Shown here: positions 6,372-45,531 of the stretch, piece after piece
How positions within the stretch are numbered: the first letter of the stretch is position 1
Layout: each line of letters starts with the position of its first letter
Origin: Octopus bimaculoides
Taxonomy: Eukaryota
Direction of reading: 5' to 3'
Assembly: GCF_001194135.2 (NCBI RefSeq)
Contig: NC_068982.1
Coordinates: 47,748,381 to 47,796,222 of the forward strand
Length of the DNA stretch: 47,842 nt
Notes under the pieces: generated by a model
Told to the model about the DNA's origin: nothing
Database searches by the model: none
What the model saw: the letters and a program-made list of their open reading frames with translations, nothing else
Translations under genes and position numbers: made by a program

Positions 6372-6590
6372 GGGGCCTTGTGGCTTAGTGGTTAAGGAGT
6401 TCAATTCATGATTGTAAGATTGCGGTTTCAATTCCTTGACTGGGCAATGCGTTGTGTTCTTGAGCAAAACATTTAATTTCATGTTGCTCCAGTCCTCTCA
6501 GCTGGCAAAAATGAGTAATCTTGTGACAGATTGGTGTCCCATCCAGGTGGGAGTATATGGACTATGGAAACCAGTCCTATTAGTGAGTCT
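6372..6590 (+). mobile_element. SINE family C (variant 3' end)
   Basis: A-box 'tggcttagtggtt', B-box-like 'ggtttcaattcc', then 'gttgtgttcttgagcaaaac...ttgctccagtc..ctcagctg'. Confidence 0.75.
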
Positions 6591-13080: not shown

Positions 13081-13255
13081 ATAAAGTATTAAATATAGAT
13101 ATAAAATACAACATGTTATAGATAGAATATAAGTTTGGGAAATTGCCGCAGAATTTATTCAATAAAGCTGAAACTTACTTGAGACTTGTTTTTAAGAGTA
13201 TATAAATTAATAATCTATATTATAATAAAGAAATCAGCTTATCAATTAGGGTGGA

Positions 13256-13393
13256 TACAGTTCTATATTTAAGAGATGAGGAATTATTTACATTATTTAC
13301 ATTATCTACATTTGACGGATATTCGTCCTCATGTGTTAACAACAAACAAGATGAGGACGAATATCCGTCAAATGTAGATAATGTAAATAATGT
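13256..13393. mobile_element. PLE-derived fold-back insertion with 12-bp TSD
   Basis: TSD aattagggtgga at 13244-13255 and 13394-13405. Perfect 45-bp inverted arms at 13288-13332 and 13351-13395. Same family as 33134-33300 and 44550-44882. Confidence 0.85.
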
Positions 13394-13879
13394 AATTAGG
13401 GTGGAGTTTGTATCTTTTACTAAAAGACAATGATTACTAAAGTCTATGCAGTTTAGAAAGTTCTTATAAATTTCTATTTTAATTCATTTTTCTCAAAATT
13501 AGGTTTTCAAAATTCTTTTACTATCGAAGATTGCAACTGCCTTTATGATGGTTCCTAGGATACTCTATACATTAAGAATCTGCATCAGTTTGACTTGGTG
13601 AATTGAATCGAATGTTTTACCAATCTTTGATACTGTCAAACAGCTGTTATGCTACAAGAATTTGAAGATAACGGTTTTATACACGGAAACATATTTTTAA
13701 AAGTTATATTTTGTAGATTTTAGTTGCAGTTATTGATAAACTAATGCTTCTGTATTGTTAAGAATAAAATTTCATTTCTTTGAGATAGCTCCTTGATTAC
13801 TTTTCACACAAAACTCAATTTTGGAAGACAGTGTAAACAAAATGGTGCTGAAAGAAAACACACGAAGAAAGAGAATATA

Positions 13880-26923: not shown

Positions 26924-26947
26924 TCGTGTGCGTGTGTATGTGTGAAG

Positions 26948-27280
26948 GTGCATGGCTCTGTGGTTAGAGCATCCGACACACGCTCATGAGATAGTGAGTT
27001 CAAATCCTGGACAAGGTTGTGTTGTGTTCTTGAGCAAGACACTATTTCATGTTACTCCAGTTCACTCAGCTGTAGAAATGAGTTGCGACATCACAGGTGC
27101 CAAGCTGTATCGGCCTTTACCTTTCCCTTGGGTAACATAAGTGGCATGGGGAGAGGAGGCTGTTATGCATGGGCCACTGTTGGCCTTCCACAAAACCAAC
27201 CTTGCCCAAACTTGTGGTCTTGGAAGGTAACTCTGTAGATGCAATCCCATGTCATTCATGACTGAAAGGGGTCTTTGCTC
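26948..27280 (+). mobile_element. SINE family C
   Basis: A-box 'tggctctgtggtt', B-box 'gagttcaaatcc', 'tgttgtgttcttgagcaagacact...ccagttcactcagctgtagaaatgag' CORE-like block. Homologous to 34316-34650. Confidence 0.85.
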
Positions 27281-27676
27281 TTTACCCAATATATTTGTAT
27301 TGTATTTATAATATATCTTCTTGCTCCACATGAGATCATTCCGGGATGTCAATTCCAGCTCAAGAGCACAGTATGTCTTTCATTGGGGTTTTCAGGGCTA
27401 TGGTCTTGGCCCAGCTGCACAATTTAACAGCCAACATGCTGAATGTTTTAATGAGACACCACTCATATGTATGACTATTGGCTGACAATAAGCTCATCCA
27501 ACCTTTATTTTTATCCCTGCAGAGTGTCCACAACACTCTCTTTATCTGTCAAACCAGGTGAGGGAGCTGACTTAGTCACCAACCACTCAACCACAAAATA
27601 GGTGATACTGGGTTACACAGTACCAGTTAGTTGCAAGATTTTCTTCACTTGTCCTAAGTATAATATATAACATATA

Positions 27677-33055: not shown

Positions 33056-33191
33056 GCCTGCTCATACAATGTGAAAATAATGGTCAACTTTCACAGACAG
33101 AAACCTTACAATATATGATACATAAGCAATTGAGTACATTATTTACATTATTTACATTTGACGGATATTTGTCCTCATCTTGTTTGTTGTT

Positions 33192-33237
33192 AACGCAACG
33201 TTTCGGCTGATATACCCTCCAGCCTTCTTCAGGTGTC
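33192..33237 (-). ncRNA. Minimal type I hammerhead ribozyme (PLE-associated)
   Basis: GACAC-CTGAAGA-A-GGCTG(gagggtatat)CAGCC-GAAA-CGTT|GCGTT. Palindromic ACGT stem III; cleavage predicted between 33197 and 33196. Confidence 0.8.
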
Positions 33238-33285
33238 TTGGGGAAATTTCGAACCTGGGTTCTCATTCCTAAGGTATTTGTTTGA

Positions 33286-33325
<40 letters not shown>

Positions 33326-33329
<4 letters not shown>

Positions 33330-33401
33330 TCACTGCCTGCAATCAAACTCGGAATCTTGGGGTTAGTAGCCTGCGCTCTTAACCACTACGCCATATGCCT
33401 G
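33326..33401 (-). other. 76-nt tRNA-like module with Pol III A/B boxes in the PLE 3' region (not a tRNA gene)
   Basis: CAGGCATATGGCGTAGTGGTTAAGAGCGCAGGCTACTAACCCCAAGATTCCGAGTTTGATTGCAGGCAGTGACCTG. A-box TGGCGTAGTGG, decayed B-box GAGTTTGATT, terminal CAGG/CCTG pairing. Confidence 0.7.
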
Positions 33402-34315
33402 TGGGCAATTATGGAGTGATTTTAGGGCTTACAAATCTTATATTTTTCTATCCTTCCTTAATACCAGTTCCCATATGCTATTCATATCTGCACTAGGTCT
33501 GCTTAGGAGGTTATTGTGTCCAAGCATATGTGCTGCTTCTTTTAGTTTTCATATTTTCCAGTGGTGTTTTCTGTCTATTATTTTAACTTCATCCCACAAG
33601 GGGAGGTGGTCTCCAATTTTCCATACATGATCAGCTATACCTGATTTATCAATATCTCCTCGTGTCACAGCTTTGCGATGTTCATCTACCCTTATTTTGA
33701 GGGGGAAGCATCTTCCTGGTGGGGCCAGAGAAAAAAGGTGTCATCAACATATCGCAGCCATAGTTTATAGTTGAGTTGGTGCCACAAAAAGGACTGTCTA
33801 ATAGTAAATCTGACCAATTAACAAATTGCAGCTGCTAAGGAGAAAAGGAGATTGCATTAAAAATATAACCAAACCAAAACCACCTGCAAAAAAGTAAGTG
33901 TAAATTAGAAAGACCAAATCTAAATATTATTTAAATAAATTTCTTATTTTCTTTTGCCACAAAAAGCAATCAACTATAACTGCGTAAAGTTTTTAGATGT
34001 TATTCGAAAAAAAGAAAAAGAGAATAAAAATCAATACAATCTTATGATTGGAATAGTGTCAAATAAAGCATGTACTTTACTTTTTTTTTAGCAGAAAATG
34101 TACTGAAATAACCTTTTAAAGCACTATTAAATATAGCTTTTTGATTAGATCAAAAGGTGAGATATAAGTATATGAGTATATATTATATATATGTGTGTGT
34201 GTGTGTACATACACACACACACACACTCTGACAGGATGTATGACTAACAAGAATGGCTGAGAGGTTTATGTGAAATCTGTTTGTTTCTTTGAATCCCTGT
34301 TATTACTTTATATAA

Positions 34316-34650
34316 GCACATGGCTCAGCGGTTAGAGTGTCGAGCTTACAATTGTGAGGTTGTGAGTTCAATTTCTGGACCGGGCTGTGTGTTGTGTGTT
34401 CACAAACAAGAGACTTCATTTTACATTGCTCCAGTTCACTGAGTGTAGAAATGAATTGCAACATTACTGATGCCAAACTGTATTGGTCTTTGCCTTTCCC
34501 TTGGAGAACATTGGTGGTACGGAGAGGGGAGGCTGGTATGCATGTGCAACTGCTGGTTTTCCACAAATAACTTTGCCCAGACTTATGCCTTTGTGGGGAA
34601 CCTTTTAGGTGCAATCCCATGGTATTTTATGACTGAGGGGAGTTTTTACC
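34316..34650 (+). mobile_element. SINE family C
   Basis: Homologous to 26948-27280 throughout. Confidence 0.85.
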
Positions 34651-35409
34651 CTTTATATATATATATGACATGCAAATTTGTGAAGCATTCCATATTTTTT
34701 AATTAAGGTGGTGCTCCAGCACTGCCATCGTCAAATGACAAACAAATAAAAAAATAAAAGACTATATATATACATATCTTTATTTATATATCTATATAAT
34801 AATCTGCTTGTTTGTTCACTCATACTTTAGTTAGAGGCAGAGTAAAAGTGAGAGAGAGGGAGGGGAAAAATATGAGTAGAGGAGAAAGAAGTGAGGAAGA
34901 AGTAGAGAAAGATGTATAATAAGGACAAAAGTGTCACGTGGTTAGTTGAAGGGAGAGGCAAAGAGCAAGAAAAGAGAGGGAGATGGAAGTGTTAACGACA
35001 TGCTGTAGGGTGGGAAGGGAAATGTAAAGAGAAAGAGATATATTTAGGATACGATATTTAGCAGAGGGTGATGTTCTTGTGGTGAGGTTAAAGAAAGGTA
35101 GATTGGGAGAGACAGATAGGGGAAGCAGTTACATTGAGAGAGAGCTAGATAGCATTTGTATTGTCAGAGTTGAAATACATGGACAGTAAGAACATGTAGA
35201 TATAAATAAACAGCTGGACTGAAATGAAATGAACTTTACTGAAAACTATAATGATGATGATTATAGTGTTGGTACTGGTGGTGGTGGTGGTGGTGTGTGT
35301 GTGTATGTGTGTGTGCACATGAGCAACTTTGTGTCTTGTCCCCCACCAGTGTTGGCATATATATGCCAACATTCTCTACTGATTGAAAGGGGGACAGGAG
35401 CAACATAAA

Positions 35410-36729: not shown

Positions 36730-36995
36730 ATATATATGGTTGTTTATGGAAGACCAGTAGTTGCCCATGCATACCAGCCTCCCCTCTCCATGCCACCATT
36801 GTTATCCAACGAAACCCAAGCGCTGATACAGCTTGGCACCAGTAATATTGCAACTCATTTTTACAGGTCAGTGAATTGGACACTGTGAAATGAAGTGTCT
36901 TGCTCAAGAACACAACACACAGCCCAGTCCAGGAATCCTACTCATTACCTCATAATTGTGAGCCTGATGCTCTAACCACTGAGCTATGAACCTAA
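36730..36995 (-). mobile_element. SINE family C
   Basis: 'gatacagcttggcacc...gtgtcttgctcaagaacacaacac...ctctaaccactgagc'. Confidence 0.85.
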
Positions 36996-37927: not shown

Positions 37928-38520
37928 CAGGGTTTGGACAAAATAATGGAAACACCTGGCATCATAACATCATAATTTTGAAATATCTATAAAACCATCA
38001 AAAGCTTGTTTATTTTTATGTTTTTTGATTTATTATTAGTGTTGCTTCATATGTTTTGCGAAAACTGCAGTTTTTTTTTTTTCAGATATCATCAGAAAAA
38101 GGTAATTAAAATTCATTAAAATGACAGATCTATCAGACTTTCAAAGAGGTCAAATTGTTGGTGCTCGTATGGCAGGCACTAGTGTAACAAAAACATCCGC
38201 AGTGTTTGGTGTATCAAGAAGTACTGTCTTGAAAGTAATGACAGCCTTTGAGAAAGAGGGAAAAACCTTGTTAAAACAAAACTCCGGAAGAAAACCAAAA
38301 CTTTCAGATAGGGACCATCGGACTCTTACGCGAATTGTTAGAAAGGATCACAAAAGTACAGCTCCCATTTTACTGCAGAGCTTAATGACCACCTCGAGAA
38401 CCCAGTTTCCACAAAAACTGTTTTCCAGGAGCTGCACAAAGCAGGATTTCATGGGAGAGCTGCAATCAGAAAACCACTACTTTCAAAAACAAACGTTGCA
38501 GAACATTTAGTGCGGAGTAA
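37928..38520 (+). mobile_element. Tc1-like transposon 5' fragment (TIR plus paired-like HTH)
   Basis: TA followed by 'cagggtttggacaaaataatggaaacacc'. ORF 38121 'MTDLSDFQRGQIVGARMAGTSVTKT...GVSRSTV..VM...GRKPKLSDRD', then a frameshift to 'ELNDHLENPVSTKTV..ELHKAGFHGRAAIRKPLL'. Confidence 0.9.
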
Positions 38521-44102: not shown

Positions 44103-44549
44103 TACAAATAAGAGTTCAGGATTTGATTGAATCAGGTACTTAAATGGTAAAGCACCAGGCCAGGTTAAATAAAGAGAGTCATGTATATTAAGAAAGTACA
44201 GGAACATCTCTATAGAAGAATTAAAGACTTCATTGGAAACAGCTGTAGTGAACGAATCATTATCCACCTGTTGTTTCCGTCTTTGAACTTCTTTCCTTTA
44301 ACAGCTCATATGTAACATCTCTTCCCTGAAGTCGGAGGCTCATCTCATCCTAAGATGGAATCAATCTGCATACATTATTTTGGACCACTGAGCCCCCAGA
44401 AACAGCCGTTGGATTTGTAATACTTTTCATCAACCCCTTTAATTCTCTATATTTGTATTCTGTGTAAGTCAGACTTTTTGCATGTATACATACATACATT
44501 TTTTTTGTATTACATGTATTCAATATACTTTATATATTGATCTGTCTAA

Positions 44550-44882
<333 letters not shown>

Positions 44883-45531
44883 NNNNNNNNNNNNNNNNNN
44901 NNNNNNNNNNNNNNNNNNNNNNNNNNNNNNNNNNNNNNNNNNNNNNNNNNNNNNNNNNNNNNNNNNNNNNNNNNNNNNNNNNNNNNNNNNNNNNNNNNNN
45001 NNNNNNNNNNNNNNNNNNNNNNNNNNNNNNNNNNNNNNNNNNNNNNNNNNNNNNNNNNNNNNNNNNNNNNNNNNNNNNNNNNNNNNNNNNNNNNNNNNNN
45101 NNNNNNNNNNNNNNNNNNNNNNNNNNNNNNNNNNNNNNNNNNNNNNNNNNNNNNNNNNNNNNNNNNNNNNNNNNNNNNNNNNNNNNNNNNNNNNNNNNNN
45201 NNNNNNNNNNNNNNNNNNNNNNNNNNNNNNNNNNNNNNNNNNNNNNNNNNNNNNNNNNNNNNNNNNNNNNNNNNNNNNNNNNNNNNNNNNNNNNNNNNNN
45301 NNNNNNNNNNNNNNNNNNNNNATAATATTTAGAGAAATATTTTTTTCCAAATGTTAGGATTAAGAAAAAAAAACAAGAATGAAGAATAGTAGAAGAGTCA
45401 TTGAATAGTGAGAGAGGGGTAAAGCATGAAGTATAGTAGAAGTGTCATTGATTATTGAGAGAGGGGGTCGGAATGGAAGAATAAAGTTGGAAAGTGTGAC
45501 ACACTAACACACTGGCATTCACTTTCACATT

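Follow-up and report, generated by a model that had tools for sequence, protein, structure and literature searches.

A tRNA-derived module, and candidate internal RNA polymerase III promoter, between the endonuclease and the hammerhead ribozyme of an octopus Penelope-like element

The window analysed here, a stretch of 47,842 nucleotides of Octopus bimaculoides DNA (contig NC_068982.1 of assembly GCF_001194135.2, positions 47,748,381 to 47,796,222), contains a copy of a Penelope-like retroelement in which a tRNA-like sequence stands between the stop codon of the endonuclease and a hammerhead ribozyme. For comparison, 13 related loci (L001 to L013), located by way of protein homologues and of a single DNA scan, were retrieved; two of the source assemblies in ENA, ERZ21867824 and ERZ25068762 (the latter the source of L011), are referred to as E218 and E250. 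All positions of the focal copy, which measures ~670 bp, refer to the minus strand, and its features are as follows.

33710..33800, minus strand: reverse-transcriptase remnant (…LWLRYVDDTFFLWPHQED), the start of the 5'-truncated copy, from six-frame translation and comparison with the intact homologous open reading frame at L007 9704-10687
33441..33709, minus strand: GIY-YIG endonuclease, C-terminal half (…PLKIRVDEHRKAVTRGDIDKSGIADHVW…), interrupted in frame by TGA at 33551-33549, from six-frame translation and homologues
33440-33438, minus strand: TAA stop codon of the endonuclease reading frame, from direct reading and translation
33429..33435, minus strand: TATA-like box, mutated to TTTGTAA in this copy, from alignments with sister copies and E218
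33400-33326, minus strand: tRNA-derived module with canonical tRNA box spacing and broken stems, identified by its motifs, by manual parsing of the structure and by conservation among related copies
33325-33288, minus strand: (AAT)13, an internal microsatellite spacer whose length varies among copies, from direct reading and copy comparison
33238..33287, minus strand: spacer with the hairpin GAACC-CA-GGTTC and the B-box-like GGTTCGAAATTTCC, kept in several lineages, from alignment
33192..33237, minus strand: minimal type-I hammerhead GACAC / CUGAAGA / A / GGCUG-loop-CAGCC / GAA / ACGU / U^GCGUU, from a manual parse and alignment
33135..33196, minus strand: 3' tail after the cleavage site, a short form ending AATAATGTA, from copy comparison

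The fragment LWLRYVDDTFFLWPHQED corresponds to part of motif C of the reverse transcriptase and is the sole trace of that enzyme upstream in the six-frame translation, and a deletion of ~585 bp, measured against the intact frame of L007, joins this remnant to the endonuclease half. Because the motif C fragment and this deletion are what is left of the upstream coding region, the focal element is a 5'-truncated, internally deleted and dead copy. The endonuclease piece shares 90% identity with an O. vulgaris protein and with a protein from ENA; longer homologues of the family carry RVT_1 and HTH_animal domains, and one homologue is annotated by JGI as a GIY-YIG endonuclease. The affiliation with reverse-transcribing elements is indicated by the YVDD fragment in the window and by homologues with PF00078, which also match group II, retron and Drt reverse-transcriptase models. 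The GIY-YIG affiliation is indicated by the motifs VYSIPCSCGRLYKDET…R..EH in relatives (the window keeps the C-terminal half), and no matches to the NCBIfam bacterial models are obtained with the endonuclease-only query. Membership among Penelope-like elements is additionally supported by the hammerhead, by a target duplication and by inverted arms, which are seen in the 13.3-kb copy of the window and in L001, L007, L008, L010 and L011. After the TAA codon come 38 nt, the tRNA-derived module of 75 nt, (AAT)13, a spacer, the hammerhead and a tail ending at ~33135, an order in accord with that described by an earlier sequence-only reading of this DNA (GIY-YIG stop codon, tRNA-like module, (AAT)n, hammerhead, element end). 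The interval is best explained as the 3' control and terminal region of a canonical Penelope-like element with a C-terminal GIY-YIG endonuclease.

A comparison with the octopus relatives reveals the same arrangement in other copies. The copies in the window share ~81-94% DNA identity with those of O. vulgaris and O. sinensis, and the succession of endonuclease stop codon, ~40 nt, module, (AAT)n, hammerhead and tail is found in the focal copy, in L001a of O. vulgaris and in L007a and L007b of O. sinensis; in L002, an ENA scaffold, the module directly follows the stop codon and the contig ends soon after. Besides the focal copy, five copies retain the endonuclease end, and all five have the module in this place. 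In every octopus copy that keeps the region, the module is joined to the endonuclease upstream and to the hammerhead tail downstream, so that the linkage to the endonuclease and to the (AAT)n-hammerhead end, which the sequence-only reading had proposed to examine, holds throughout these copies. The consensus 3' region of the family consists of a TATA-like box, a module of 73-75 nt, (AAT)n, a dimer-type minimal hammerhead and a tail with the capacity for a 9-bp terminal stem.

The module displays the box spacing of a tRNA gene. The A box TGGCGTAGTGG at 33393-33383 matches TRGCNNAGTGG at 11/11 positions, a pattern that occurs four times in the window against an expectation of 0.51. The A and B boxes noted earlier hold in part for the focal copy: its A box is exact, but its B box at 33350-33340, which reads GAGTTTGATTG, has decayed and is canonical in the sister copies (AGTTCGATTCC, at canonical tRNA positions 52-62). 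In the sister-copy modules, which are 73 nt long, the A box lies at positions 8-18, and the numbering conforms exactly to that of a canonical tRNA. The features of a SINE-type head (SINE, short interspersed nuclear element) are found in this A box with 11/11 matches, in the B boxes of L007a (10/11) and of L011 and L013 (11/11), and in the gap of 32-34 nt between them. A scan for A and B boxes in all of the octopus and related DNA finds the modules beside other A/B-box tRNA-like heads with an equal spacing of 32-34 nt; these heads are read as SINE heads, and the box quality of the module matches theirs. The sequence-only reading had found no match to the SINE heads A, B and C beyond the boxes, and this stands: the identity between the module and the SINE heads of the window is 54-66%, which amounts to generic tRNA-likeness, and blastn of the module within the window yields no other match, SINE heads included. 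The L011 module may resemble tRNA-Glu and the E218 modules tRNA-Ser.

These boxes are not accompanied by a tRNA fold. The acceptor, anticodon and T stems of the sister-copy modules are mostly unpaired by manual reading, ARAGORN at its default settings reports no tRNA in the window or the loci, and Rfam reports none in the window at the gathering threshold or at E values up to 10. When ARAGORN is relaxed to 70-80%, the calls are at noise level only and fall on both strands, and the highest tRNA score in Rfam, 17.7 bits (gathering threshold 29), is reached in L013 only. The folding z-scores of the modules are +1.2, +0.5, -0.7 and -0.2, no better than shuffles, and a cloverleaf is found in no module by ARAGORN, Rfam or folding against shuffles. 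Because no module has a tRNA fold, any constraint on the module would not act on RNA structure. Between L011 and L013, the first 10 nt together with the A and B boxes are identical at 27/29 positions and the module interior at 22/43, with 85/107 for the adjacent spacer and 37/41 for the hammerhead. Conserved boxes with unconserved stems fit what would be expected of an internal type-2 promoter of RNA polymerase III (Pol III).

The ribozyme has a core CUGAAGA...GAAA at 33232-33194 in the focal copy, where cleavage is predicted between 33197 and 33196 and one mismatch occurs in helix I. The pattern CTGANGA-N21-GAAAYGTNGTG has two matches in the window (the focal copy and the copy at 44.6 kb) against zero expected. 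By manual parse, the family consensus is GACAC-CUGAUGA-A-GGCUG[loop]CAGCC-GAA-ACGU-U^GUGUU, which has an unpaired base 5' of stem II, a helix I of 5 bp and no helix III loop; helix III consists of the palindromic ACGU only and is able to pair between two molecules. Twelve hammerhead copies from four lineages align without gaps except for one loop insertion. In this alignment, 84% of the cells pair when helices I and II are in register, compared with at most 55% in slid controls, and one compensatory pair (UA to CG) is present. Rfam gives no hammerhead match in the window or the loci at E values up to 10; its hammerhead models presumably do not cover a motif without a helix III loop. The in-register core and helices and the architecture of a minimal hammerhead ribozyme make this ribozyme a credible prediction.

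Variant hammerhead cores are also present. In L003, L004, L006 and L010, GAAACG is replaced by AAAATG or AAAACG; AAAATG (L003 and L006) fits CpG decay of methylated old copies, and a G-to-A change at the CpG gives AAAACG. The 3' untranslated region (UTR) of the beetle locus (L012 4120-4260, Leptinotarsa decemlineata) is ~140 nt long and contains TATAAAA, a hammerhead-like motif and a T-rich flank; the motif reads CCGAAGA…GAAACGTC^GTGAAC, with U4 replaced by C.

Two further copies in the window bear on the question of where copies begin.

44548..44882, minus strand: second copy with a long-form tail, a hammerhead core at 44669-44631 and an intact helix I, from a motif scan
13261..13394, strand not assigned: third copy, an inverted tail arm and then a direct arm from 13333, from arm comparison

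In the 44.6-kb copy, a long (AAT)n runs into an N gap at 44883-45321. No endonuclease similarity is found beyond this gap by blastn within the window, so the 5' end of this copy would lie at most ~440 nt from the (AAT)n, given a correct gap size. The 13.3-kb copy lies between the two units of an 11-bp target duplication, ATTAGGGTGGA (13250-13260 and 13395-13405), and is composed of tail only, with arms of 48 nt. The 18 nt between its arms, GTGTTAACAACAAACAAG, correspond to nucleotides 1-18 of the hammerhead 3' product, and 13333 is the first base of the predicted product; the direct arm therefore begins at most 1 nt from the predicted cleavage site. This start is an indirect hint that the predicted site is cleaved in vivo. 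A different junction is found in L001b of O. vulgaris (~6072), in which (ATT)n, the reverse-complemented module, the palindrome ATGCCC-AC-GGGCAT, (AAT/AAC)n, the hammerhead and the tail follow one another without an endonuclease. The palindrome lies at the first base of the module, and both arms begin at most 2 nt from that base, so that, to the question raised earlier of whether copies start exactly at the tRNA head, L001b provides one clear case. In L006, which belongs to a separate lineage, a perfect palindrome of 18 nt with a 3-nt spacer is centred on the module first base. If inverted arms mark the 5' ends of templates, L001b and L006 would point, independently of each other, to an RNA end at the start of the module, which is where a type-2 promoter would initiate transcription. 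Seven octopus insertion events can be distinguished: four keep coding sequence, one consists of tail only, one begins with the module, and one, at 44.6 kb, has its start hidden by the gap. A tandem array of the retrozyme kind is not seen, the two window hammerheads being 11 kb apart, although no dedicated scan for tandem repeats was made.

The module is also present in diverged Penelope-like lineages with ~50-70% protein identity. In E218 (63-71% protein identity), an A/B-box module is found at the homologous place in L003, in L006 and in both arms of L008, and the same upstream block, TTTATAA…TGTCC…CAG|G, precedes these modules; the box TTTATAA stands ~35 nt upstream of the module in the sister copies as well as in this lineage. 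In L011 (52% identity) and in L013, a JGI contig, the stop codon is followed at a distance of 7 nt by a module whose boxes are near-perfect; there is no TATA box, and a hammerhead of the same design comes ~110 nt later. An internal promoter is the only kind of promoter recognisable in these two elements. A scan of JGI metagenomes with the octopus module finds nothing, and a scan with the hammerhead finds one locus, L013. Outside the element, E218 and E250 share no repeats with octopus at E < 1e-10, and a full-length element with an upstream terminal repeat is not present among the 13 loci, all of which are 5'-truncated or inverted-pair copies.

In light of these observations, the module may be an internal Pol III promoter that makes a SINE-like unit inside an autonomous parent, a reading that is considered a serious possibility, if a little short of probable. 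At the DNA level, the module would act as a Pol III-type promoter of type 2, possibly assisted by the TATA-like box, and transcription would start at, or at most 2 nt from, its first base. The transcript would cover the spacer, the ribozyme and the tail and end at the first T run in the flanking DNA. Uncleaved RNA would retain the 3' recognition end of the element and would be copied in trans by the reverse transcriptase of the element, which would give copies that start at the module. Alternatively, two ribozymes would pair through the palindromic ACGU of helix III, the RNA would be cut after GAAACGUU, and the tail fragment would then be copied to give copies starting at GUGUU. It is because of this proposed transcription and copying in trans that the module would constitute a SINE-like transcription unit embedded in its parent. 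The built-in SINE-like unit envisaged by the sequence-only reading gains from the family-wide layout, from the modules of the diverged lineages, from the one copy that starts at the module and from the conservation of boxes without a fold; short units that start at the head are a minority. A wider proposal, that a Penelope-like clade, present in cephalopods and in one or more further host lineages, has long kept a functional internal Pol III promoter in its 3' UTR, so that each autonomous copy would use two polymerases and also produce a short, trans-mobilisable, self-cleaving RNA, is more doubtful and is put forward tentatively.

Several observations weigh against a Pol III function of the module. 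The focal copy is probably inert because its own B box and TATA-like box are mutated. The module is deleted in L004 and L005. L010, which is the youngest lineage and the one with the most copies (a cluster of 38 members; its arms share 98.7% identity), has a degenerate A box and lacks a canonical B box. No module or hammerhead is recognisable in the metagenome relative L009, and in the Leptinotarsa relative (42% identity) TATAAAA and a hammerhead-like motif are present while the module is missing. Because the module has been lost in L004 and L005 and is absent from L009 and the beetle element, it is evidently dispensable for the element itself. Additionally, module-start events account for 1, possibly 2, of the 7 in ~77 kb of octopus DNA, and because a single one clearly starts at the module, the putative SINE is not prolific in this sample. 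Such losses and such rarity are consistent with a module that is a functionless passenger, namely a tRNA-derived SINE or a tRNA retro-copy that an ancestral master element acquired a single time in its 3' UTR, with boxes that persist since they were initially perfect and some lineages are young; in L003, L004, L005 and L010, where the module is lost or degenerate, propagation has not stopped. This explanation is nevertheless regarded as unlikely, as the module has kept the same position across lineages with ~50-70% protein identity, its boxes are far better kept than its interior, which diverges faster than the adjoining spacer, and two independent palindromic junctions fall exactly at its first base. 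The chances are similarly low that the TATA-like box drives RNA polymerase II (Pol II) from about the first base of the module, with the tRNA-derived stretch as a leader, in the manner of Penelope-like terminal-repeat promoters that drive downstream tandem copies. The octopus and E218 lineages have the TTTATAA box at about -35 in common, from which Pol II would likewise start at the module, so that a Pol II or hybrid promoter is allowed for, and the beetle element has TATAAAA before its hammerhead without a module. However, L011 and L013 have no TATA box and a module that abuts the stop codon, and a leader does not explain the selective conservation of the A and B boxes. The sole dissected promoter of such an element, that of D. 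virilis Penelope, is internal and of Pol II type and lies within the terminal repeat, which is a precedent for this alternative, but it is TATA-less (PMC2377424).

An RNA-level role, in which the module would be a tRNA mimic cut by RNase P or RNase Z to set RNA ends, like the mascRNA of MALAT1, is very improbable: an RNA 5' end at the module first base does coincide with the position of an RNase P cut, but there is no cloverleaf, the stems are mostly unpaired, folding equals that of shuffles, and ARAGORN and Rfam are negative. A one-off nested insertion of an (AAT)-tailed SINE into the focal copy, the contrary case named in the sequence-only reading, has a negligible likelihood. It would agree with the lack of another module match within the window, but it is contradicted by the related loci and is excluded: O. 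vulgaris, O. sinensis, a metagenome scaffold and other lineages hold independent copies with a module in the same position, no target duplication flanks the focal module, and no free module is found in ~77 kb of octopus DNA. The missing terminator emphasised earlier contributes little to a decision. It is correct that the sense strand of the focal and 44.6-kb copies is free of TTTT over the stretch between the module and the element end, module included, and 9/12 of the 3' regions have no such run. However, the probability of zero runs estimated from shuffles is 0.49 for the focal copy and 0.08-0.72 per copy, and the reading frames are similarly poor in TTTT (0-2 runs per 0.5-1.6 kb). Because the whole sense strand is poor in T, the absence is not distinctive, and T-run depletion is rejected as evidence, the paucity in shuffles and reading frames being equal; the absence is compatible with Pol III read-through and adds little. 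The first T run is located 4-235 nt into the flank in 11/12 copies, and in the 44.6-kb copy no T run occurs within the 400 nt of flank scanned.

Other parts of the 3' region show features of their own. In L010 (7440-7545), a (GCA)n-like microsatellite occupies the position of (AAT)n between module and hammerhead, and this place may tolerate, or even favour, a simple-repeat spacer of variable kind. At window 33245-33258, L010 7594-7606 and L008 11059-11070, ~30-45 nt upstream of the hammerhead core, stands a second motif similar to a B box, GGTTCGAAATT(T)CC; it is conserved in the octopus and E218 lineages and missing from L011 and L013. In the latter two, a hairpin GGUCCU-UCUC-AGGACC stands directly 5' of the hammerhead (L011 7799-7844, L013 821-866), with sub-threshold Rfam matches to the histone 3' stem-loop of 19.9 and 22.7 bits (gathering threshold 34). 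The long-form tail at window 44548-44620 contains a possible terminal stem of 9 bp, AGAUGAGGA / UCCUCAUCU, and the tail of L011 (7880-7935) has the stem GACGAGGA / UCC(C)UCGUC with compensatory changes. With folding z-scores of -1.1 and -1.9, the stem is a candidate recognition structure for the reverse transcriptase; its 3' arm lies beyond the end of the focal copy. The motif ATTAG(A/G) recurs at copy junctions (window 44541-44548, 13250-13260 and ~33815; L001 ~5790): the 3' end of the 44.6-kb copy and the 5' junction of the focal copy carry TATTAGACAG, L001b carries ATTAGACAT, and the target duplication is ATTAGGGTGGA. This recurrence suggests a target-site preference or an extension at the end of the tail.

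Elsewhere in the window, which has 13 N gaps, an open reading frame of 129 aa (MTDLSDFQRGQIVGAR…) is located at 38121-38510 on the plus strand, which may be the N-terminal DNA-binding part of a Tc1/mariner-type transposase. Many tRNA-derived SINE heads of several families are present (at 6381, 17067, 26953, 28113, 36986, 37362 and other positions), some of which are followed by (TA)n or (CA)n. A repeat of ~250-340 bp occurs in three copies that are 75-80% identical (34319-34655, 36738-36993 and 26946-27284), one of which is inverted and two of which flank the region upstream of the focal element.

The element belongs with the canonical Penelope-like elements with C-terminal GIY-YIG endonucleases whose terminal repeats contain minimal hammerheads (Cervera & de la Pena 2014, PMC4209133). 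Both have a reverse transcriptase with a C-terminal GIY-YIG domain, 5' truncations, inverted or tandem arms and target duplications, and their ribozymes are of the same dimer type, in which helix I is short, helix III lacks a loop and one base 5' of stem II is unpaired, whereas the octopus element has in addition the A/B-box module and the microsatellite between stop codon and ribozyme. Full-text searches, with Repbase and subscription journals outside their scope, gave no paper that connects Penelope-like elements with a tRNA-like sequence or a Pol III module. Within the papers searched, the remark that the architecture is not recognised as described holds for an autonomous element with such a module, but there are precedents for its parts in the schistosome elements Sm-alpha and Sj-alpha and in the retrozymes.

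According to the accounts of Ferbeyre 1998 and Laha 2000 given in PMC6765202 and PMC2770079, Sm-alpha and Sj-alpha combine a tRNA-type Pol III promoter with a hammerhead. As described there, they share with the octopus unit a tRNA-derived, apparently Pol III-type unit joined to a hammerhead, and their self-cleavage shapes the transcripts; Sm-alpha is a free, non-autonomous repeat of ~335 bp, often in tandem, with a canonical hammerhead competent as a monomer, whereas the octopus unit lies inside the 3' UTR of an autonomous element, has a minimal dimer-type ribozyme and is rarely found as free short copies. The Pol III/SINE interpretation is plausible, partly supported and unproven. If the wider proposal of a long-kept functional promoter is true, such an element would represent the parental state from which SINE-like elements of the Sm-alpha type with hammerheads, and perhaps retrozymes, bud off, and would show one way in which SINEs can arise within their autonomous partner. 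If the use of Pol III were confirmed, the octopus element would be an autonomous retrotransposon with a built-in SINE that links Penelope-like elements, Sm-alpha-like SINEs and retrozymes.

Retrozymes are argued to be non-autonomous derivatives of Penelope-like terminal repeats (bioRxiv 10.64898/2026.07.22.740005; PMC7229834). The metazoan retrozymes, which are of the type without long terminal repeats, resemble the octopus unit as non-coding hammerhead RNAs that are related to Penelope-like terminal repeats and are thought to use their machinery. They form tandem repeats of 170-400 bp and circular RNAs with no described promoter, in contrast to the octopus unit, which has a candidate promoter and is not seen in an array. 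The module bears on how retrozymes and other non-autonomous elements with hammerheads are transcribed, for which no promoter is described in the literature searched, and the genomic copy that starts at the predicted cleavage site bears on the in vivo role of Penelope-like ribozymes. With the tRNA-derived SINEs that are paired with LINEs (long interspersed nuclear elements; SINE2/tRNA), the octopus unit shares an A/B head at tRNA spacing without a fold and the 3' tail of its partner. However, the partner is a Penelope-like element instead of a LINE, and the head lies inside the partner itself, which bears on how tRNA-headed SINEs gain the 3' end of their partner, as head and tail are already together in the octopus element.

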